From Utricularia gibba (Eukaryota > Plantae > Magnoliophyta), in contig NEEC01000007.1 in assembly GCA_002189035.1 (NCBI GenBank), positions 1,984,001-2,048,000 of the forward strand: a stretch of 64,000 nucleotides of DNA, given 5' to 3'. The position numbers and the translations under genes were made by a program. Shown here one piece after another: positions 1-49,381 of this stretch (positions within the stretch are counted from its first letter, which is position 1; each line of letters begins with the position of its first letter). The notes under the pieces are model-generated. The model was not told where the DNA came from. It ran no database searches and was given only the letters and a program-made list of their open reading frames with translations.

Positions 1-2
1 AG

Positions 3-220
3 CCCAAAATTCACAATGAAGATGACATAAGAATGTTGACAAGGAAGTAGAGAGAATACATCAAATCCAAAGAAGATAGAATGAAAATATTTGGACTAAA
101 GAATACAGGGAAGAAAGAGAAAAATATCCGAGAGTTCAAAAAACATGCAAAGTAGTCAAGAGAAAAGGATTCTGGAAGAAAAATTGTACATGAACTAATA
201 AAAAGAAGATGGACGTAAGA
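3..220 (+). mobile_element. Possible degenerate Ty1/copia gag remnant
   Basis: Frame 3 reads PKIHNEDDIRMLTRK*REYIKSK...KDSGRKIVHELIK with stops. It loosely resembles the copia gag DDxALLTKxFKKF segment before the zinc knuckle (recalled, not searched). Purine-rich, and runs off the window start. Confidence 0.25.
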
Positions 221-1273
221 ATTCAGCTCATTCTCGATGATTTCTTTTATTCAAGAACACTACTCCTAATGAGGAATAAATTGCAATGTTTTAGCTTGAT
301 AAACGTTTGAATGTGATACTAAATGTCGTGGTTTAATATATTTAATGTATTAAAAGAAATTTATAAATCATTTTAACAAACTAAATAGTTTTTACTCTAT
401 TAAGACTTAAAAACATATTAGAGAAAAAATGAGAATTTTCGATTCAATTGTTATCGATTAAGGCTGTTTTCACAATAAACACATTTTAACAAATTAAATA
501 TACAAAAAAAATTAGTACACTAAACAACATTTAACTCTATAAAACACAATTAATATATATATATATATACAATAAAAACAGTGTTATCAATTCTACATAG
601 AATTATTTACATTTCTCAGTCAATGTTTATTTTTTCTTTATTACATTGCAACTTGAACATGTTATGTATAATGTTTTATATAATAATTTTATTTTTCTTC
701 TACATGAGTAGTTAAGCATTAAGTGGTACATTAAGACTAAAAGGGACAAGCATATTCATTATTAATTAAGCTATATTAACAATATAATCACACTAGTTTC
801 TTAATAAAGCAGAATAGATTTAGAAGTAAAAAATATTGGAATGATTATCATAAGTCAATCTTAATTAGATTTAGATTAAAGATTAGGGGAAGACAAGGCT
901 TTAGGAAGATTTGAACTTTTGTTGATTAGATAAATAATTTTTTGTTGCAATAGAATAAATTATGAGTATGTTTTTTATTGAAGTCTCAAATTATTATATT
1001 ATTTTTTTAGGTAGAAATTTAATTTACTCGTTTATTACTTTACTGTTTTTTATCCTATAATTGTATTAGTCCTATTTTAAATTTCATTTTCATTGTGAGA
1101 AAAATAGAATACGTAACATCCACACAACAAGTACAATGCTTTTTTGTATTAGACCCTAGTTTCATTGTGCCCATATTTTATTAATGATTGATTGTCAATT
1201 AGACTTATAAGTTTATTTGGTAAGGGAATTGACATTTTATATAACGATGTGTGAATTTCTCATTTATCACTGA

Positions 1274-1908
1274 GGGTTTCTAAGATCCATGTTATGAAGT
1301 TACGGCACACATGAGTGGGATGGACGTATTTGGCTTTGAATGTTCGTATTCGCACATATTGGAAGAAATTAATCATTGATGGATGTCCATTATTAGGTGC
1401 ACTGAAATTAATGTATATACTTAGTTTTTCTAACCATTTGTCCCTCTAAAGTCCATGCATTTTTCAATATCCACCTAGTTTGATTGAGAACGAGCCAAAG
1501 CGCGTTACACCACCCTAAAGTTCCATGCCCCTGCCACATCTAATTATTTTAAAAAATAATTATTTATCGTTATTTTCACACATATTAAAATTAAAAAAAT
1601 TAATTATCATTTTATCCTTACATTCGTTTTAACATTTAATATTTATAGTTTTACTTTTTTTTCTTTGATGAAAAAAACATAATACAATATTATTAGAGTC
1701 TCTATATTTTTAATATATATCTTTTCTTATCCATAATAAATGTAGTATATCATCTAACCCCCTAGCCTTATCGACCTATATATCCATCCATACTGGACTA
1801 TTCGTTTCGGTTTTGTCTATGCAAAACTAGACACACTATTAACTATCCTACGAAAACCATATATTAAAAATAAACATTATCTTCGGTAAATATCATTTGA
1901 TATCCACA
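1274..1908 (+). repeat. Duplication block B (non-coding), paralogous to 4034-4624
   Basis: Colinear similarity by eye, e.g. acggcacacatg(a/t)gtgggatggac, tttgaatgttcgtattc, gtatatacttagtttttct, tccctctaaa, tagtttgattga, ccatatattaaaaa, atttgatatccaca. Confidence 0.9.
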
Positions 1909-1910
1909 AA

Positions 1911-2759
1911 TATTGAAATTGGATCTCATAGTCCTAAGTCTGGAGTTGGGCCACGAAAATTTGAAATGGGCCTACAAAATGAAATTGGGCTCAAGAATCT
2001 ACTTTGTTGCTTTTCTACTAATTGAAAAAAAAATGAAATTGTAATCCAAGCTTTCTCGTTTGCATATTGAAAATTAAATTGAATACATGAAAATTGGGAG
2101 TGATTTTAAAATGAAAAAAAAAGGAAATTCCATTGCTAAATAAATAGTTAAATATTAATTATCAATCAATAATGAAGATAAGGGGGACGTGTGCCGCAAG
2201 CAATGCTTTCATTAGGTAGGCAGCTATGGCGACAAGAATTTTCTATTCCATTGTGGAAAAAAACACAAATGCGCTGAGGTGAGTCGTTGACTTTTACTTG
2301 GGGATGAGGATAGGGAAAGCATTCCTTCTCCCACTCCGAGTAGCTAGCTACGTGCTTATGTATCTGATTCCGTTGGTGAATTTTCTAGGAAACTTCGCCT
2401 CTGGTTAACACGGTTTTGGAGCTACAAATAGAGCCCCTTGGGGAGGGGTTCATTTCCTGGATTAACACGAATCACGATGCGGTCTTCTCGTGTGGCCTGG
2501 CAATCCGGGAAGAAGCCCGGATGGGAGAAGGATCCTAAGCTCGCGGAGAAGGAGGAGGAGGAGGAGAAGAAGAAGAAGATGAAGAAGAAAAAGAAGAAGG
2601 ACATGAGTCATCACGGTGGTCATCATGGAGGTCATCACGGCGGTCATCATGGAGGTCATCACGACGGCGGTGGCGGCGAAGGGGGATGCGACGGTGGCGG
2701 TGGTGGGGGATGCGGTGGTGGCGGTGGCGGGGGATGCGGTGGTGGCGGAGGTGGGGGTT
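1911..2759 (+). repeat. Duplication block A (promoter plus His/Gly gene 1), paralogous to 2994-4038
   Basis: Shared tattgaaattggatctcat start, agaatctactttgttgcttttctactaattgaa, gcgctgaggtgagtcgttgacttttacttgggg, tatgtatctgattccgttggtgaattttctaggaaacttc, and the coding start. Confidence 0.92.
1947..1991 (+). promoter_or_regulatory. Three site II (TGGGCY, TCP-type) elements upstream of His/Gly gene 1
   Basis: TGGGCC 1947 and 1967, TGGGCT 1986. Two are retained in the paralogue (3034, 3054). Confidence 0.45.
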
Positions 2760-2764
2760 GTTGA
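2477..2764 (+). CDS. Small Lys/Glu-, His/Gly-rich protein, copy 1 (95 aa)
   Basis: ATG 2477 in frame with the listed ORF. MRSSRVAWQSGKKPGWEKDPKLAEK, poly-E/poly-K, (GGHH)n, then G/C tail ending GGGC*. The N-terminal frame is conserved with copy 2. A TATA-like tacaaata lies about 50 nt upstream. Confidence 0.65.
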   Translation: MRSSRVAWQSGKKPGWEKDPKLAEKEEEEEKKKKMKKKKKKDMSHHGGHHGGHHGGHHGGHHDGGGGEGGCDGGGGGGCGGGGGGGCGGGGGGGC

Positions 2765-2993
2765 AACGTTGCTTTTGCCGTTGCACGTTTCTGGTTAGTA
2801 TTGTACTTAGCGGTTGTAACCGCGGAGGCCACGTTTGGTAGTTTGGTAGTGGTTATGAACTTATATAAAATAAAAGAATCCATGCATCATACCACCCTCT
2901 TTATTTATCAATTTATTTTTTAATGTATGGGAGAGTATATTGAATATTAGTATTCCTCAAATGGTAAAATAACCCACGGGAAGACTGATGGGC

Positions 2994-4038
2994 TATTGAA
3001 ATTGGATCTCATGCTCATACCCCAGTCTTGAGTTGGGCCTACAAAATTGAAAATGGGCCTGCAAAATTCGATGCAGGTCCATAATGACAAATTGGGCACC
3101 AGAATCTACTTTGTTGCTTTTCTACTAATTGAACAAGCTTTCTCTTTTGCATGTTGAAATAAATTGAATAAATGAAAACAGATAAAGAAATAAATAGATA
3201 AATACTCATTATCAATCAAATAATGAAGATAAGGGGTGCCGTGTGCCACAAGTAATGCTTTCATTAGGTAGGCAGTTCTGGCGACAAGAATTTTCTATTC
3301 CATTGAGGAAGAAAGCACAAACGCGCTGAGGTGAGTCGTTGACTTTTACTTGGGGGATAAGAATAGGGAAAGCAACCCTTCTCCCACTCCGAGTACACGT
3401 AGCCTACCTGCCTATGTATCTGATTCCGTTGGTGAATTTTCTAGGAAACTTCAACACTGGTTAACACGGTTTTGGAGCTTCAAATAGCCCTTTGGGGAGG
3501 GGTTCGTTTCCAGGGTTAACAGGAATCACGATGTGGTCTTGTTGTGTGCCGAGGCGATCGGGGAAGAAGCCGGGATGGGAGAAGGATCCCAAGCTCGCGG
3601 AGAAGGAGGAGGAGGAGAAGAAGAAGAAGAAGAAGAAGAAGGAAAAGAGAGGTGATGGTGGCGATGGCGGTGGTGACGATGGTGGCGATGGTGGTGGCGA
3701 TGGTGGTGATGGTGGTGGTGGCGGTGGGGATGGTGACCATGGTGGTGCCGGCCATGGAGGTCATGACGGTGGTCATCATGGAGGTCTTCATGGAGGTCAT
3801 CACGGTGGTCATCACGGTGGTCATGACGGTGGTCATCACGGAGGTCATCATGGAGGTCATCATGGTGGTCATCATGGAGGTCATGATGGTGGCGGTGGTC
3901 ATCACGGCGGTCATCATGGAGGAGGTCATGATGGTGGTGGTGGTGGTCACGGCGGTCATCATGGAGGTCATGACGGAGGTGGGGGTTTTAGTGGCGGCGG
4001 CGGGGGATGCGGTGGTGGCGGTGGCGGGGGTGGGGGTT
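2994..4038 (+). repeat. Duplication block A' (promoter plus His/Gly gene 2)
   Basis: Colinear with 1911-2759. The coding repeats are expanded. Confidence 0.92.
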
Positions 4039-4058
4039 CTAAGGCCCATGGTATCTAG
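3531..4058 (+). CDS. Small Lys/Glu-, Asp/Gly-, His/Gly-rich protein, copy 2 (175 aa)
   Basis: ATG 3531. MWSCCVPRRSGKKPGWEKDPKLAEK, poly-K, (GGD)n, about 12 GGHH/GGHD units, GGGGGCGGGG, and a tail SKAHGI* encoded by block B'. Confidence 0.7.
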   Translation: MWSCCVPRRSGKKPGWEKDPKLAEKEEEEKKKKKKKKEKRGDGGDGGGDDGGDGGGDGGDGGGGGGDGDHGGAGHGGHDGGHHGGLHGGHHGGHHGGHDGGHHGGHHGGHHGGHHGGHDGGGGHHGGHHGGGHDGGGGGHGGHHGGHDGGGGFSGGGGGCGGGGGGGGGSKAHGI

Positions 4059-4624
4059 GTACGGCACACATGTGTGGGATGGACCTATTTCACTTTGAAT
4101 GTTCGTATTCATACATATTGGTTATGATTCATGGATGCCCATATTAATTGAAGTATATACTTAGTTTTTCTCTCAATTTATCCCTCTAAATTCCACGCAT
4201 TTGTCAATGTCCACATAGTTTGATTGAACCCAAATGAGAACGAGGCGAAGGGCGTGACACCACCATACAGTTCCACAATTAGTCACATAATAAATAATTA
4301 TTTATCATTTATTTCATATATTACTTCAATCTTTATAATTTTGTATCATTTTTTTGTAAAAAAAAATCATATATTATTAGGATAATTTCTAAATTTAAAT
4401 ATATCTTTTTTATTATCCGTAATCAATATAGAATATTATCTAATCCCCTGGCCTTACCGACATCTATATCCATCCATATCGATTATCCACCTTAGTTTTG
4501 TCGATGGAAAACTAGATAGATTAATAACTACCCACCACAAGATTGCTACATGAAATAAACTTCGCAGGATCCTACCAAAACCATATATTAAAAATCTTAG
4601 GTAAATATCCATTTGATATCCACA
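4034..4624 (+). repeat. Duplication block B', paralogous to 1274-1908
   Basis: Begins gggttctaagg and ends atttgatatccaca, matching both ends of block B. Confidence 0.9.
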
Positions 4625-4690
4625 TACTCGGGACTTGCTCACCTATTGGGTCACTAAGTTCATCATGCACTAGAAAACGAAGTTAGGGTT

Positions 4691-5050
4691 TTGTTTGGTT
4701 GCCGTACAAAAATGAGGTATTGGGCGTTTGAAGCCCCGCCATTCTATACAAAAACAATCATCACTTTGACCCACTGGATCCCGTCGATCCGACCCGGAAC
4801 ACAGTTCGTCCCATTGGATCCCGCCCGAGAGTTTTGGAGATTCTCCCCTCCATCGTTTTCCTTTGTTTTTTTTTTCAAAATGAATTTAGATTTGGAGGCC
4901 CTGGTTTCAATCTTCCAACGGAGAAGAATATTTCAGGGGCTGATCCAGTAAAGAGATATAATTAATTTGGAGGTCAAATTGGCTCATCGCCTCTCACCTG
5001 CTTGAAGGCTTCAAACGTCAACGCCTCCTTCAAACAACCAATCAAATGCC
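4691..5050. mobile_element. Possible decayed MITE (degenerate inverted repeats)
   Basis: ttgggcgtttgaagcc (4720-4735) versus ggcttcaaacgtcaa (5007-5021), an 11-bp perfect inverted core. Weaker tgtttggttg/caaccaatca similarity lies outside it. No clear TSD. Confidence 0.25.
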
Positions 5051-5582
5051 AAACAAGAACCGTACGACACAAGACACCTATTTTTTTTATTTTTCTCACG
5101 CAAAAAAAAAGAAGAAAAGATAATTTGCAGCCGCCATTTTTTACTCCCAGCTGGTCTTGAGAGGAAAGTTAGGCGTGGAGTTGTGGACACGGCAAACCAG
5201 TCCTCCAATAAAAAACGGCCACCTTTAGTTTTTTTATCTGGAATTTATAAAAAAATTAATATTTTCTAAATCAATGTCATGACTCATGTCCTCAGTGCAA
5301 TTGGACGACAGGAAGGAGTTGAAATTAATGTTTTTAATTTCATCGAAATTTTTCGAAAAGATATTTCTGAATTTTTTAGATTATTTTCTCCTAAATTTTG
5401 TTTTTTTTAAATTCGAAATTTTAATAATTTCAAGCATTGATTGAGATCGATACTGAAGCTTTTGGTTTGATTGTGAAGAAAGCCAACTGATTATTGGCTT
5501 AATTGATTTGATTGGAGAATTAAGTTATTTTTTTGTTGATTTTCTACAAAATAAGGGGATAAAAATATCTGAGGATTCACCT

Positions 5583-7627
5583 TCACCGGCCGTTGTCGAA
5601 GGAATTGAGGGAAATTGTGCCGAATGAGTTAGGAGGAGCCTTGGACGACGTCGTATTGGGCCCCGAGTTGTCGCTGAGGAAAGCCAAGAATCTGGATGTG
5701 ATTTCGCCCGCTCTACGCCGATGTTCGTCGGAGATATCGGTTATCTCCGGCAATGGCTCATCGCCGTTCAAGTATTTCACTACAGTCCTCATATCGGGCC
5801 TCGCCTCCGGCGTCGGATGCGAGCAAAGCATCCCGATGCTGAGCACCAGCTCCATCTCCGGCACCGAGTAATCGGTGCCCAATCTCTCATCCGCCGCTTC
5901 CAAAAGGTTTCCCTGCCGCCAGCATTCCATCACCCAATCGGACAGTATCATATCCCGACTAGCGTCGGAGATCACCGGCGGCTTCCCGCACGCCACCTCT
6001 AGAAGCAATGTCCCGAACGCGAATACGTCCGTATTCGTCGAGGGCTTCCCAGTTCGCGTCAATTCCGGCGCGATGTAGCCCACTGTGCCCACAACGTTGG
6101 TCGTTTGTGAGGTTTTGCCGCGGTCGTGCAATCGGGCTAGCCCGAAATCTCCCAGCTTTGCGTTCATGTCTTTATCTATTAGCACATTGCTTGATTTCAC
6201 GTCGCGGTGAATCACCACCTTCTCCCATTCTTCGTGCAGGTAGAGAAGCCCAGAAGCGACGCCTTTCAGGATGCTGAATCGCTGATCCCAGGGTAAGAAG
6301 ACGTCATGTCTGGGATTGTACAGTAGTGAATCCAGGCTTCCATTGGAGACGTACTCATACACAAGCAGAAGATTGTTCTTCTTTTTGCACCAGCCGTGAA
6401 GATTCACCAAGTTTTTATGACGTAATCTTCCTAAACTCTCAACTTCCGCTGCGAATTCTCGAGTTCCTTGAAGGGGGTCGTTTGAAATTATCTTCTTTAC
6501 TGCAACTTCAGCTCCTGTAGTGGGTAAAATGCCTTTGTAGACAGCGCCATAGCCACCCACTCCGAGGATTTCAGTCACTTGAAATCCCTTGGTCGCTTTA
6601 TGAAGATCCTGATACTTGAATCTATGTGGGCAATCAAGCTCCCAGTCCTCAATATCTTCAGCCCTTCTTGCTCTTCTGTACAGAAATGCAATCACTGCAA
6701 GTATGATGAACAGAATTGTGGAAGATGCTGCTATGAGTGCAGTTCTCACCCTTGCCCCACTTGAAACACGGGGTCTATCATTCGGGACGGTGGAAGAAGA
6801 GAAAGATCGAGTTGATCCGCTATTCCGTTTTGCTTAAAGCTCCACCCCAGAATGTAATGTGAAGAGCTTGATGCCGCCCCCGTTGCAGCTGAGAATCCTA
6901 TGTACATGTTGTCCAGAAAAACGTCTGACAGATTAATTTGTTTAGAAATCCAGGGCCTCTCCGGCTTCGTGGGAACTTCTCTGACTGGAGCAAGTGTTAA
7001 ATTGATGATACTGCTGCGTCCATCAAAATCTATCCACACTTGGACCGGACCAACTTCTTCCAACCTGAAGTCTTCTTTGTTATCAGACTCTGCATCCGGA
7101 AAATACCCAATTGGTTCAGTAACAGCAGGATCTCGCATCCCATTGATGTTAATTCCGACATGATTTCCAGTGGAATCCACCTCTCTGCCAAATCCTACGA
7201 CTGTATCGAACTCCACCATGAGGATATGATTAGACGAGTTACCGTCATTTGTGTGAGTGAAAACACCCATATAGTGCTCGGATTCTCCGGTTATGTTAGG
7301 CGTCGGAGCTATGATAAAAGAGAGGCCATATCCGCCATGATTGGACCTCAAGTTCGCAGGTCTAATATGGAAAACGAAGCAAGTCGAAAAGGAAGAAGTG
7401 CCGTTGCCTCCGTTTCGGGAAATGGGTATTGGGTCTGGATAAAAAGCTCTCCCAATGGCGCTGAAGGAGGTGTCGGTGAGTCTGAGAGCTCCGGTGGGTT
7501 TAAGGACAGTTGCACCGTGGAGGAGGAGGGCCGTGGTGTTGAACCCCTGGGCGATGAACTCCACGGAATTAGAACCCGTGAGGAAAGCAGTGAAAAGTAG
7601 GAGCCGAATGAAGGAATAAATCGCCAT
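5583..7627 (-). CDS. L-type lectin receptor-like kinase (clade VI-like), with a one-base frameshift near 6790 in this sequence
   Basis: Signal peptide, legume-lectin domain (VEFDT, GFSAATG, HYILGWSF), TM ALIAASSTILFIILAVIAFLY, kinase GVGGYG/VAVKK/HRDVKSSN/DFG. The lectin and kinase halves are in different frames. Adding one base at LLPP gives PPVPNDRPRVSSGARVRTALIA. Confidence 0.9.
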
Positions 7628-43098: not shown

Positions 43099-44913
43099 TT
43101 AGGAGGATTTGGCTGCTGGTTGCCAACAAGAAAGAGCGTAAAGAACTCTGCCTTTCCATCCCTGCAGCATCCATTCCCCATCTTCATCTACTGAGAAATC
43201 TATGTGGTACTCCGTTTTCACCTTATTCTTGACACATTTCACGATCTCTGCATCCAGTGGTACCTGCCGGAAACCGAGCCTCCTGTTTCGAACTTGCCAC
43301 TGCCTGTATGTTTCCGGCTGTTCGACTCGTTCGCTCCCTTCGCAAGCTATGATGTTCAATGCCTCCTTTCCATAGAGCTGTTCCTCGAGCAGTAAACGGT
43401 TCTTATCTTCCCGGTCCATGGTGGCGTCAAACATGTCAAACAAGCTTGAGTACTGAAACAATGCCTCTCTGAATCTGGTGACGAAATAGGGTATGTTGTA
43501 AGTTCCATTGAGCACTCCGAAAATTAACATATTAGGATTCATCTTCCTGATCAATCTTAGAACAGCATCTCTTGGGCTGCCGGAATTTACGGTTTCATCA
43601 GAGACATTTTGAAGCCGGTACAGTGAGTTCACCACAAGTAATTCGCCCTCTTCAAACTTGATGTCTTCAACTTTAATGGTTTCCCATTTCTGTGCTATCG
43701 GACTATACTCGAAGGGAACATTGAATCTGGAACAGTATTTTGCCAAGCGTCGGCCGGTCTCCGCCACCCTATCAGCCGGCCGGAATCCTGGTTGAGGGAG
43801 ATCGATCCCTGTGACATGAAGCTTCGGAGGGCCACCAGGACGTTCGGATAAAGAACGGATGAGACAAGGCCATTGGAAACCATAAAGAATGCCAAAATCA
43901 ACGATGTGGAGAGACGGCACGCCCACTGCAAGCTTGTTGATGGTCTTATTCGCTAGCATATTCGACATCTTCCTAAAAGGGCAGGCATTTATCAGTGTTT
44001 TGTAGGCTTTCAAGATGTCCGCAGCAGAGATCCGGCGTGTCGACATGGCAGCATACAACTCCATCCCGGCCCCCGCCAATCTAGCTTCAAGGGCAGTTGC
44101 GAAATAGTGAGCCAGCCTCTCTGTGCTGTCTCCGTGGGAAGAAGAGTGCTGCCTTATACGGATCAGAAGATCATTCGCAGTTCTGATATCGTGATTCGCC
44201 ACAGCTTGTGCACATTGGATAAGCAAACCAGTCAGATCTACAACTTCTCTGGTAATCCCATGTTTCTTACTCCCCTTTGGCCTACCTCGGTTATGTCCTC
44301 TCCACAATTTCTTCGATTTTTCACAAGAAACTCCATCGGTTCTCCCGCAAAGAAGCACGTTGTCATAAATCTCAATCGGCTCGGATTCGAAATCACAGTT
44401 CGCTACATGTTTACTACTTCGATCTACTTCAATCGAATCGCTTTCTTCCCGCGAATGATATTTCTTCCCTATAGAATTAACCTCGCCCGTAGACGACACA
44501 GAACTCGAAGAATATTTACCGGAGGAGCTCTCTCCGGCGGCGCAACCACAAGAGGTCGTGGAATCGGCGTAGTTGTTGTTGAGCAGCACATCGTACAGAG
44601 ATTTCTCCGTAGCCTGTAAAGCTAAGCAATCCTGCAACATACAGGGCCTAGTCTCCAAATCCTCTTCTTCCATAAGCATCTGGCTGATAAACTTGAGAAT
44701 CGCATCAGAATGGTCAGTTTCATGAGATCCGTCCGCAGAATCTTGTGTAACATCAGCCGGAATATTCCTCTGAGTCGTAGATGAATTATTGACCGCCGCA
44801 ACTTCAGGTTTGACTTTGAAGTGGTTTTCATCGGGAAAGGTCACCACCGATCGGCAATTCCCCTGAAAATCCTTCGCCTGAGGAAAGCAACTACTAAACC
44901 CTAGGGTATCCAT
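43099..44913 (-). CDS. SCL14-like: GRAS transcription factor, SCL14/LISCL clade, copy 1
   Basis: Intronless. LKFISQMLMEE...LQATEKSLYDVL, LHIVDFGILYGFQWP, ERVEQPETYRQW, WMLQGWKGR..ALSCW. First ATG at 44913; the ORF is open to a TTG at 44961. Confidence 0.93.
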   Translation of the reverse strand: MDTLGFSSCFPQAKDFQGNCRSVVTFPDENHFKVKPEVAAVNNSSTTQRNIPADVTQDSADGSHETDHSDAILKFISQMLMEEEDLETRPCMLQDCLALQATEKSLYDVLLNNNYADSTTSCGCAAGESSSGKYSSSSVSSTGEVNSIGKKYHSREESDSIEVDRSSKHVANCDFESEPIEIYDNVLLCGRTDGVSCEKSKKLWRGHNRGRPKGSKKHGITREVVDLTGLLIQCAQAVANHDIRTANDLLIRIRQHSSSHGDSTERLAHYFATALEARLAGAGMELYAAMSTRRISAADILKAYKTLINACPFRKMSNMLANKTINKLAVGVPSLHIVDFGILYGFQWPCLIRSLSERPGGPPKLHVTGIDLPQPGFRPADRVAETGRRLAKYCSRFNVPFEYSPIAQKWETIKVEDIKFEEGELLVVNSLYRLQNVSDETVNSGSPRDAVLRLIRKMNPNMLIFGVLNGTYNIPYFVTRFREALFQYSSLFDMFDATMDREDKNRLLLEEQLYGKEALNIIACEGSERVEQPETYRQWQVRNRRLGFRQVPLDAEIVKCVKNKVKTEYHIDFSVDEDGEWMLQGWKGRVLYALSCWQPAAKSS

Positions 44914-46359
44914 TGGAGACGAAGGATATGGATAAGCAGAGAAAAAATTCTCATCAACCAAATGTTTTCTAACCCGGAAAGCAAATGAAGAAGAAAAGGT
45001 ATATATATTCCTGACTTTCTCTAAACCTTTTCATCTAACGGTCAGCATTCATCCAATCCAACGGCCCGAAATACGCTGGTTGACCCACAGGTTCAGTTTC
45101 CTCAGCTGAAGCTTCCATTTTCTGTCTTTTTTTCATCTAACAGCCACCGTGAAACCGAAACCAAAGTATTTAAAAACTCGCTGATATTATAAATTAGTTT
45201 ACTAATTCAAAAACTTAGAAATATACAACAGCTACCATTCTTATTTAATAATAAAAAATATTTTTATAAAAATAGAAATTGTTCAAAAAATGTATTGAAC
45301 TTATTACTATTTTTTATTTCTAATTTTCACAAAAAAATAAATGTTAAAATTATCCTTTCTTTGCATGCTTGTGAAGGTGGAGCAGGCGCAATTATTTGAG
45401 CAAGTGGGCATATGATCCTTGGGGTTGTGTGACTGCCCTTCATCATGTGCCACAACTGCATCAACTTTATTCTCCGTCTTTCATTTTTTGTTACATTTTT
45501 TTCTTAAAAAAAGTGTATTAAAAAAATAGTAACCGTTGCTGTTTATTTTGGAAAATGGACCACGCCCACAGCGCACATAATTGTATTTGTCATTTTCACA
45601 CGTCATAGTATTGCTTTTTCAGGGGGGGGGGGGGAATTGTTCATTGAATCCCAGATTTATCTTATAATTGCTTTGGACAATCTTTGGCGTTTTGTGTGAC
45701 ATCCCTTTCCAAAATTTCTTTAGAAAAATATGGCCTTGACTTAATTTGGAGGTATTTGGTAGGATATAATATTAATATGCCATTTGATAGTAGATTATTA
45801 ATATGTTTTAAATATAGTGTAATTAGTTATATATACTTAATTGTATATAATATTTAATATTCGAGAATATAAGTTTGAATATATAAGTGTCATAAATATA
45901 ATTAATCATTTTTTCCATTTATGTATGCCATCTATATAATTAAAAAATAAATATATAATTAATATAACCATATAAATACTATTAAAAAATAATATATATG
46001 TAAATTTGAGTATAAATATTTTATATTATATTATCAAACAAACTCTAATATTGAATTACTTATATTTATATAAATACGTATCATATGATTAAGATTGAAA
46101 ATTTATTTGATACAAGTATTTTGTATATATATATATATATTATTTACTAAAATTGTAATTAATAATTATTATTTAACATAAATAACCTTTTGCATTCTAT
46201 CAAACAAGTCAACACAAATTACCAAACATAAATTAATGCGTAAGTTAGAAAGGATACTATCAAATCGATTACTTGATGTACATAGAGAGTAACGTACATT
46301 TGACTTTTGTAGTAGGCCTTCCTTGTCTAATAGTATCGGATGGCGACGGATTCGGCATC

Positions 46360-48595
46360 CTAGTCGGAGACCCAGCAGGAGCTAGCACTCAGGATCCTGC
46401 CTTTCCATCCTTGCAACATCCAGTTCCCATCTTTATCGAACAGAAAGTCTATGTGAGAAGTGGCCTTGCTTCTGCTCCTTAGCTTCTTCATCGTCTCTTC
46501 TTGCAAGGGGTGAGGTTTGAAACCAGCTGCTAAATGCCGCGACTTCCATTGTTTGTAGGTCTCAGGTCTCTCCACCCTCTCAGCCCCTTCACATGCTACA
46601 ACATTTATCACATCAAGGGCGTAATGTTCCTGAATAAACTCATTGAGGTCCGGGTTCCCTCTCGGCAGAATGGTACCAAGCATATCAAACAGCATCGTGA
46701 AGTGGAAGAGGGCCTCCCTGAAACGGGTGAGAAAGAATGGAGAATTGTAGGATCCATTGGTGACTGTGTTCACAAAAACACTTGGCTTCATTTTCCTTAT
46801 CATTCTCAGTAGCTTGTCTCTTGGACTGTCGGGTGCAACACTTTCGTCTAGGAACCGGCCCAGACGGAACAAGCAGTTCGCACATAGAACCTCCCTTTCA
46901 CAATCTTGAGGTCTTCCAGTTTTATGTCTTCCCAATGTTGCGAAGCAATTGGGTGGTACTCCAAAGAGACCCCAAAACGTTCACAGAACTTCTTCAAGTG
47001 TCGGCCTGTTTCCTCTACTCTTTCTGCGGGTCTAAAGCCTCGCTGAGGAAGCTCAATTCCTGTGATTCTTAGCTTGGGAGGGCCACCGGGTCTCTGTGAA
47101 AGTTGCTGAATGAGCGTAGGCCAATGGAAACCATATAGGATGCCAAAATCAACGATATGGAGAGTTGAAGCTTCTGAAGCAGCTGATATAATCATCTCAT
47201 TCGCAAATAAAACAGGCAACTTCTTGAATGGGCATGTGGAAAGATAGACTTTATATATCTTTAACAACTCAGAAGCTGTCAACTTCCTCTGAATTTGGGA
47301 TGCATAAAGCTCATTTCCAGTGCCACCTAAACGAGCTCGAAGAGCACGGCAAAATAGACGACCCACGCCATTGTGGGCAGCACCATTTGTTGGCAAATGT
47401 TGCTCAATCTGCTTTAGTTGTTCCTCTGCTGTCCTATGATCACCTGCAGCAACTGACTGAGCACAGCTAATCAAAAGACTACGGAGGTCCACTACATCTC
47501 CATTGTTGTCACTCTTTTTTGCTCGAGATCGTCGACTGGAATGACTGGCTAGTGCTCCTTGCGGCAAGCCCTTCTTAGAACCAGGTAGTTTAGCCTCCTT
47601 TGTACTAAGCTCTAAAACTTCATCATCATCACAACAGAGAGTCCTTTCAAGATATTCAGAAAGGTCCACATCTTCAACAGATACAGCAGATTGTTTGATA
47701 CTTCTCTCCAAATTTTCTGAATCGCCATCCCTAGGATAGTGATGTCGTTTCCCCCTTAGTGGAAGCTCAAAACCATCAATGTTATTCTTCTCTATTTTCA
47801 CAACACCAACCTTCATGACGTCTTCTGATTTTTCCGGCAGCATATATTTGTCCAAATCAATAATCAATTTATTATCAGTGGGAAGGAACTTGCTTGCCGC
47901 TTCCATCCCCTTTTGAACTGCAAAATAGACTCTTCGTTGTTGAACATGTCATGAAGCAACATTGTGCGATCAGTATGGCCTTCGGAGTCATCAACAGGGA
48001 TAGATAATGATTGCAATTTTTTCTGCATAAACAAATTAGGTGAAACTCCATTCCTATGATCCTGCTTCAGAGTAGAATTATTCTCACTCGGATCTACAAC
48101 CCATTGAAAATCTACAAAACTAGTAACGTCATCACAAAACCCGCTTGTACAGCCACTAGAACTATCAATGGTGGTTTCAGGGGTGTCAGTTGATTGGTCA
48201 GGATATGCCTCTATATTCATATGTAAAGGTGGGTATTCCTGACCAATAAGCTCATATAAGGATTTCTCTGTTGCTTGCAAGACAAGTGGGCCATGAAATG
48301 TGTTGATCATGTCATCCGAGTTCTCTTCAACCAAATACATATTGAGGTACTTCAGCATTTCACCGGGGTCCTGATCATCAGCAGACTCCGTTTCACAGCT
48401 GGCAGTTGCAGGGGAAGAACAGTTTTCAGGATCTGGGCTTAACGGGAGGAATGGAATGTCCGAGACATTGAAATCCATATGATGATGAACATCAGTAGAG
48501 AGGTACTGAGATTGAGTTTGTGAAGTGAAAAAATCACCATACACAAACTCAAATTCATTTGCAGCATCAGAAAATTGCCTTAACTGGGGATCCAT
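46360..48595 (-). CDS. SCL14-like: GRAS transcription factor, SCL14/LISCL clade, copy 2, with two one-base frameshifts in this sequence
   Basis: MDPQ start. Three overlapping ORFs join into one GRAS protein if one G is added at QFKRG|MEAASKFLP (C4 47907-47910) and one at IVKG|EVLCANC (C3 46893-46895). VHIID, PFYRE and SAW motifs are all present. Probable 5' UTR intron about 48655-49171. Confidence 0.85.
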
Positions 48596-49381
48596 CAAAA
48601 CCGCGCTACAGAACAAACTGCCGGGACTAGCCACTCAAATATCAACTCGATTACTGCATGAAAAGTTATAGGTTTAAGCACAAGGTTTAACAACTAATAA
48701 GACAAACCATCCTTACTAACACAAAATAACTACTGAATTCGAACCAGAGGTGATGCTACAAAACAGGAACATCGCCTACCAGATGACTTGGTAAGGTCTT
48801 CTTACACAGTCTCCTACCCAACATACACTATATTTAAGAACTCCCCACCTTTCTGAAACCAATAATCAAATTTAGCATCCACACCATCGTAAGGAAGTCA
48901 CACCAGATAGAATTACCACAAATCATGAATCACGATAGCGACACGAACGGCAAAGTATTTGTAGAATTCAATTTAGGGTTACGCAGAAGTCTAGAATTGA
49001 ACTATTGGAAGCTTCATTACATGAAATCAACTTATCTCCAGCAAAAACGAAAATTCCAGAAAAAAAATCAAAGACGGTAGACAAAAAAAAAAAAAAAAAC
49101 CCAACAAGCGGTGCTAGGGATCAGAGAAACAACAACTACAAAAACTTACAGGAGAACACCAACAAGCGTACCTTCTGGTGACCAGGAGGAACACAAGGAA
49201 CACTAACTATTTATAGTGGGCTGCTGCTAAGGCAAAGATAAAGATAAAGTGAGCTCTGAAATGGTGTATGACGACGACGATGAACTCATGACTCCGTTTG
49301 TATGGTATGGAATTGACTATTCTAAACATAATTGAGTGCATTTTTTAATTTGCTTCTGCTCTACAACGTTTCGGAAACCGA

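Follow-up and report, generated by a model that had tools for sequence, protein, structure and literature searches.

Two neighbouring copies of one DNA segment that share an orientation and differ in the order of their halves raise the question of how such a pair can arise. The locus in question lies at positions 1274 to 4624 of a 64,000-nucleotide stretch of nuclear DNA from the flowering plant Utricularia gibba (assembly GCA_002189035.1, contig NEEC01000007.1, positions 1,984,001 to 2,048,000 of the forward strand), referred to in the following as the window. Here two blocks, termed A and B, are arranged in the order B-A-spacer-A'-B', and each A block carries a gene for a glycine/histidine-rich protein. 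The explanation favoured here, to which we assign about an even chance, is that the arrangement would have resulted from a single old duplication of a 1.49-kb segment by way of a head-to-tail joined, unit-length intermediate, most simply a small DNA circle.

Architecture of the duplicated blocks

Comparison of positions 1000–5000 with the whole window by self-blastn revealed the block order B-A-spacer-A'-B', with every block on the same strand. Block A (1911–2594) matches A' (2994–3648) plus/plus with E = 0.0, and the similarity continues via Gly-codon repeats to 2758/4031. Block B matches B' in two parts, 1274–1848 versus 4033–4533 (plus/plus, E = 2e-65) and 1845–1908 versus 4569–4624 (E = 1e-11). 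A third copy of A or B could not be detected in the window. Plain tandem duplication predicts the order A-B-A-B and was rejected, as it had already been in a preliminary description of the locus, on account of its wrong block order. The breakpoints were set to the base by MAFFT alignments with 60-nt flanks and by anchored prints of the six boundaries, yielding the following features:

1–1273, no strand assigned: left flank U, AT-rich (27% GC), unrelated to A, B and S, with no similarity above shuffles
1274–1908, plus strand: B, non-coding, upstream of gene copy 1; starts with GGGTT (1274–1278) and ends with ...CCACA; RNA depth zero
1909–1910, plus strand: AA at junction y, matching neither B' nor A'
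1911–2759, plus strand: A, comprising the promoter region, 5' leader and nearly the whole coding sequence of copy 1; ends with GGGTT (2755–2759)
2760–2993, plus strand: S, the unique 234-bp spacer, comprising the stop codon and transcribed 3' end of copy 1, then about 60 bp before A'
2994–4038, plus strand: A', the second copy of A, with an enlarged Asp/Gly and (GGHH)n repeat region; ends at GGGTT (4034–4038)
4034–4624, plus strand: B', which repeats B and forms the 3' end and the downstream region of copy 2; ends with ...CCACA
4625–5582, no strand assigned: right flank D, unrelated to A, B and S; extends to an L-type lectin receptor kinase gene that lies on the minus strand with its 3' end facing D

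The block ends meet at two junctions, x and y. At junction x, homology of the U|B boundary to the A'|B' joint begins at the GGGTT at 1274, and homology of the A|S boundary to the same joint stops at the GGGTT at 2755–2759; the second copy carries a single GGGTT (4034–4038), which is common to both homologies. At junction y, block B of copy 1 ends with ...GATATCCACA at 1908, followed by the unmatched AA and by the start of A, TATTGAAATT, at 1911. In copy 2, B' ends with ...GATATCCACA (…CCACA) at 4624 and A' starts with TATTGAAATT at 2994. The outer ends of copy 2 map to one point in copy 1 (1911 and 1908, 2 nt apart), and the inner joint of copy 2 corresponds to both outer ends of copy 1, with the 5-bp microhomology GGGTT. 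Since this motif is infrequent on this strand (44 occurrences in 64 kb, about 1 per 1455 nt), chance does not explain why it stands at each of the three x points. The preliminary description had reported the coordinates, the swapped blocks in one orientation and the unique 234-bp spacer, all of which were reproduced by self-blastn and the alignments. Its breakpoints coincide within 2–5 nt on formal alignment, and its placement of GGGTT at both ends of B-A and once at the A'/B' junction is exact.

The region of junction x contains four G5 runs at 24-nt spacing and no short-loop G-quadruplex motif; that a G-quadruplex caused the break at x would be speculation.

Two transcribed gene copies

Each copy of the segment contains one gene:

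2477–2764, plus strand: coding sequence of copy 1, 95 amino acids, ending in GGGC and the stop codon
3531–4058, plus strand: coding sequence of copy 2, 175 amino acids, ending in GGGSKAHGI and the stop codon

Both open reading frames (ORFs) are intact. The two glycine/histidine-rich proteins share a charged N-terminus, a Glu/Lys run, a (GGHH)n repeat and a Gly/Cys tail. The repeats of the copy 1 protein are (GGHH)5 and Gly6-7-Cys; in the copy 2 protein an Asp/Gly tract is added, and the repeat array, (GGHH/GGHD)n, is much longer. Between 2477–2554 of copy 1 and 3531–3608 of copy 2, the first nine codons show six amino acid changes (R/W, S/C, R/C, A/P, W/R, Q/R), and codons 10–26 show only three differences, all synonymous. 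Judged from these codons, the extreme N-terminus appears to be fast-evolving, with two Cys gained in copy 2.

The codon straddling junction x opens in each gene with the last T of GGGTT. In copy 1, TGT TGA encodes Cys and stop; the Cys codon (2759–2761) spans x and the stop codon lies inside the spacer. In copy 2, TCT AAG GCC CAT GGT ATC TAG encodes SKAHGI and stop; here the Ser codon (4038–4040) spans x, and the final five residues and the stop codon are encoded in B'.

Independent read support was taken from Logan contigs of other runs, with Gly-codon repeats masked and a junction counted as bridged where a contig extends at least 31 nt to each side. In these data both gene copies are transcribed; with both ORFs intact, the statement in the preliminary description that a gene paralogue was created holds. 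RNA contigs match copy 1 at 2367–2532 and 2607–2667 with 0–1 mismatches, and copy 2 at 3742–3976 with 0 mismatches in runs X5 and X6. Further contigs extend from A into the spacer (X5, 2739–2933; X6, 2750–2928; 0 mismatches), which identifies the spacer as the 3' end of copy 1 with about 60 bp of further sequence. RNA depth is zero over U, B, most of upstream A, and D, indicating that the contigs represent transcript and not DNA carry-over. No RNA contig over B' was found in X5 or X6.

Contig depth drops along copy 1, from about 240 (2367–2532) to 60, 30 and about 5 (2739–2933). Possible reasons are truncated transcripts, a third locus with a common 5' part, or an assembly effect of the Gly-codon repeats. 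A candidate intron in the 5' leader (GT at 2279, AG at 2388) was dropped, as the abundant RNA contig begins at 2367, within the putative intron. It is exactly at 2367 that a 31-mer first separates copy 1 from copy 2, so that this position is an assembly-graph branch point, neither a splice site nor a transcription start.

Upstream of the genes, the distal parts of A and A' (1943–1995 and 3030–3105) contain repeated TGGGCC/TGGGCT words between AAAAT-rich stretches, with one extra 20-nt unit in A'. These words resemble site II promoter elements.

Searches for relatives of the two proteins found none. A phmmer search against 1.84 billion representative proteins returned 0 hits, as did a word search with the N-terminal region; the word search with the whole protein was swamped by low complexity, its sole match being an unrelated fungal protein. 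Neither protein matches a Pfam family, and exact-protein look-ups of both proteins, of the antisense ORF across x and of the neighbouring DUF740 and lectin ORFs found none on record. Two metagenome scans, for which a degenerate coding pattern and a conserved stretch of 40 nt served as queries, gave 0 hits, and an Rfam scan of 1–5600 found no RNA family. Since no relative was found in any protein search, the gene is regarded as a lineage-restricted orphan.

Origin of the permuted copy

From this architecture we infer a single event, a circular intermediate and B-A-S as the source. The ends of 1274–2759 would have been joined through GGGTT, leaving one GGGTT as the A-to-B joint at 4034–4038. The joined unit would have been opened once, between 1908 and 1911, with the loss of 2 nt, and inserted 234 bp downstream at the former S|D boundary. 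The copy would thereby have retained about 560 bp 5' of the start codon, promoter region included, together with nearly the whole coding sequence, and would have lost the native stop codon and 3' end. Owing to this loss, copy 2 would read six new codons (SKAHGI) into the former upstream DNA, B', and use B' as its 3' region. Both genes are expressed today, and they differ in the length of their repeats and in their first nine codons. Three joints make up the arrangement, and a joined unit that is opened once explains both the mapping of the outer ends and the inner joint without coincidence; the simplest intermediate of this kind is a circle. Three features of a circle insertion pattern are present at the sequence level: swapped blocks in the same orientation, a single opening point, and a closure joint with microhomology.

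Several observations weigh against a single circular event. A landing site 234 bp away is not expected of a freely diffusing circle and fits local replication-based switching better, and junction y shows a microhomology of 0–2 nt plus two extra bases. An outgroup, a single-copy allele or the circle itself is not in evidence. Moreover, the block pairs, for which one event predicts the same age, are unequally diverged. Gap-guarded identities amount to 81.0% for B/B' overall (about 83% in the B flanks and 72% in the poorly aligned AT-rich core of B) and to 89.3% for A/A' overall (86.9% in the distal 270 bp of A, 91.2% in 2279–2366, 90.8% in the leader and 89.0% in the N-terminal coding sequence). 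Whole B/B' is more diverged than A/A' (p = 3e-4), and the conserved proximal segment of A (2279–2366) differs from B with p = 0.04. Such unequal divergence needs selection, gene conversion, or two events of different age.

The reads of other runs add to these objections. No bridging of the spacer/A', A'/B' and B'/D junctions was found among the contigs listed, so that these three rest on the assembly of the window, and junction x (4000–4075) was sampled in other runs by 4 words only, of which 1 occurs in a DNA run, two RNA runs and one run labelled as a different organism. With this weak exception, all runs in which the stretch occurs belong to one organism. Contigs of runs X1 and X2 leave the sequence of the window at 1968, 2025, 2859 and 4366–4371.

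The departing contigs run on for 130–770 nt with sequence absent from the whole window, which suggests that the samples differ structurally, by insertions or otherwise, within A, S and B'. Run X1 differs from the window by about 1–4% and is taken for this reason to be another accession. In an X2 contig, A' (3149–3376) is fused to A (2324–2443) with 0 mismatches on both sides and only 19 shared bases, and an X1 contig follows A' up to 3022 and then switches to A-like sequence that starts at 1937 (1937–1976). These hybrid contigs suggest exchange between the copies. Because they combine a 5' part of A' with a 3' part of A, they fit gene conversion or a three-copy allele generated by unequal crossover, and not a deletion.

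The divergence data nevertheless leave room for a single age, and the single-age model survives. Between the B flanks and distal A, divergence shows no significant difference (p = 0.35), so that the excess similarity of A is found only in its proximal promoter and transcribed portion, where it can stem from constraint or gene conversion. The well-aligned parts of B and distal A are compatible with one age for both pairs. Since the copies differ by 11–19%, collapse or haplotig confusion is unlikely; the same difference bears out the earlier statement that the copies are diverged and the event is old.

As the preliminary description had recognised, the direction is symmetric: two histories would yield identical sequence. 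In one of them, B-A-S as the source would already have carried GGGTT at both ends and would have given rise to a closed circle; in the mirror history, an A'B' circle would have been closed at y and integrated at a GGGTT in U|S. The Cys-stop ending of copy 1 had been put forward as a sign that B-A is the donor. The Gly6-7-Cys period of copy 1 carries on into the Cys codon at the A|S joint, which would lend modest support, of about 8:1, to native contiguity of A and spacer, hence to B-A-S, as a random joint beginning with T gives Cys one time in eight. Circles closed by microhomology usually leave short direct repeats on either side of their source, and those flanking B-A-S are a weak hint that it is the source.

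A history free of circles, in which the copy was made by fork stalling and template switching or microhomology-mediated break-induced replication (FoSTeS/MMBIR), or by capture of two released fragments, A and then B, at a nearby break, is rather unlikely in our estimation, though it accounts well for the local character of the event. All templates lie within 3.4 kb, the copy is situated 234 bp from its source, and the 5-bp microhomology at x as well as the 0–2 bp with two untemplated bases at y are in line with such a process; the literature on extrachromosomal circular DNA (eccDNA) itself names MMBIR as the alternative for circle insertion patterns. Yet three switches are needed, the adjacency of 1908 and 1911 is left unexplained, whereas a single opening of a joined unit gives it free, and self-blastn shows that the spacer was not templated from any part of the window. 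A circle and local template switching are indistinguishable by sequence alone. Of the proposal of eccDNA re-integration, the topology, breakpoints and microhomology turned out as predicted, whereas the circle is not distinguished from template switching or fragment capture and the 234-bp landing is not what a freely diffusing circle would predict. Less probable again is a remnant of a tandem array (for example A0-B-A-B1-A'-B', with A0 deleted and B1 replaced by 234 bp of unrelated DNA), or an older B...B' pair flanking a later-duplicated A, which would cover a two-age history. The higher divergence of B/B' relative to A/A' looks as if the pairs differed in age, the hybrid contigs of X1 and X2 point to unequal exchange or conversion, and x lies at the end of a possibly fragile Gly-codon repeat tract. 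Short words shared by S and B also form a collinear chain that exceeds all 300 shuffles; however, 13–20% of real AT-rich control segments score equally, local alignment of the spacer gives z = 0.6 against B and 3.3 against B', and long-gap alignment of S against 380 composition-matched controls gives p = 0.20 (B) and 0.36 (B'). Neither with B and B' nor with U and D does the spacer share significant similarity, and its interpretation as a decayed B is unsupported. Local alignments against shuffles likewise detected no decayed A or B units in the flanks U and D, so that no longer array is visible. An array would furthermore require two independent deletions to share the 5-bp point x, and B1 to be replaced exactly from x to y.

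Two further explanations are highly improbable. Block B, a discrete AT-rich block of 0.6 kb with sharp ends, might be a mobile element, for example of the MITE or Helitron type, which followed an ordinary duplication of A by inserting twice independently, upstream of copy 1 and into the 3' end of copy 2. In the window, though, B has no terminal inverted repeats, no target-site duplication and no third copy, DNA depth on B is not raised in X1, and alignment of S with D showed no resumption of the copy 1 3' end after B'. It is just as hard to believe that the order in the window is a mis-join of the assembly. The three junctions without independent bridging and the departing and hybrid A'/A contigs of X1 and X2 would fit such an artefact, but the 11–19% difference between the copies argues against it, and the other three junctions are supported by other runs: U/B is bridged by an X1 contig (800–1505), B/A is covered by X1 contigs (1827–1956, as deduced from the table of other letters rather than from a listed piece), and A/S is bridged by X1 record 6 (2702–2859) and by RNA contigs of X5 and X6, which pass from A to S with 0 mismatches.

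Genomic setting

The locus is followed by an L-type lectin receptor kinase gene (5583–7627, minus strand), and the neighbourhood further includes a DUF740 gene and GRAS genes. The best relatives of the kinase are all from Lamiales and only 65–68% identical, indicating that the protein collection contains no close relative. Its lectin domain (6746–7627) and kinase domain (5583–6749) lie in different frames with a stop codon between them; the gene could be a frameshifted pseudogene, contain a short intron or reflect a sequence error. Two adjacent sets of GRAS-domain ORFs are located on the minus strand at 43099–44961 and 46848–48634. In the second set, ORF 46848–47906 holds only the first half of the domain and is adjoined by the overlapping ORF 47864–48634. 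The two sets may form a tandem pair with one copy split.

Relation to known systems and significance

Several known systems resemble the arrangement described here. At cattle KIT, serial translocation via circular intermediates has been described (Durkin et al. 2012, cited in bioRxiv 10.1101/2022.06.22.497135, PMC9694575). According to these citing sources, the KIT segments share with the present locus the swapped blocks in the same orientation, an inner joint that corresponds to the source's two outer ends, and a copy whose own outer ends map to one point. In contrast, they measure 492–575 kb, moved between chromosomes and have a known ancestral state, whereas the unit described here comprises 1.5 kb, lies 234 bp from its source, is old (11–19% diverged) and has no fixed direction. 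In wine yeast, a segment of Zygosaccharomyces bailii was amplified and translocated by way of eccDNA (Galeote et al. 2011, cited in PMC9694575), and tilapia carries a 28-kb circle-derived copy of vasa (cited in bioRxiv 10.1101/2022.06.22.497135). As cited there, both cases are circularly permuted insertions that were read as reintegration of a circle and yielded a gene copy, as proposed here; unlike here, their direction was fixed by comparison of strains or species.

A textbook route to circularly permuted genes is permutation by duplication, in which a tandem duplication loses its outer halves. This route also turns A-B into B-A, but it predicts one permuted unit from A-B-A-B and not an intact and a permuted unit separated by unique DNA. 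As regards the proteins, glycine/histidine-rich plant peptides with Gly-Gly-His runs are known as shepherins from Capsella. Both proteins share such runs with the shepherins, but by eye they display no signal peptide and the searches found no sequence relative, so that membership in this group is unsupported.

Given its architecture, the locus is best regarded as a plant instance of the already known circle insertion pattern that is small, old and local, with the caution that the polarity requires an outgroup. It is conceivable, though doubtful, that a chromosomal circle of about 1.5 kb with a complete promoter and gene re-entered the germline beside its source and generated, in one step, an expressed paralogue whose C-terminus and 3' end are new. 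The idea that small circles can reinsert heritably is widespread, but the few documented cases are mostly large and from animals or yeast. A plant example on the kilobase scale would show how such events can create gene novelty at once: at this locus, the joint rewrote the C-terminus of a protein, and both copies are transcribed, each with a promoter and an ORF retained.

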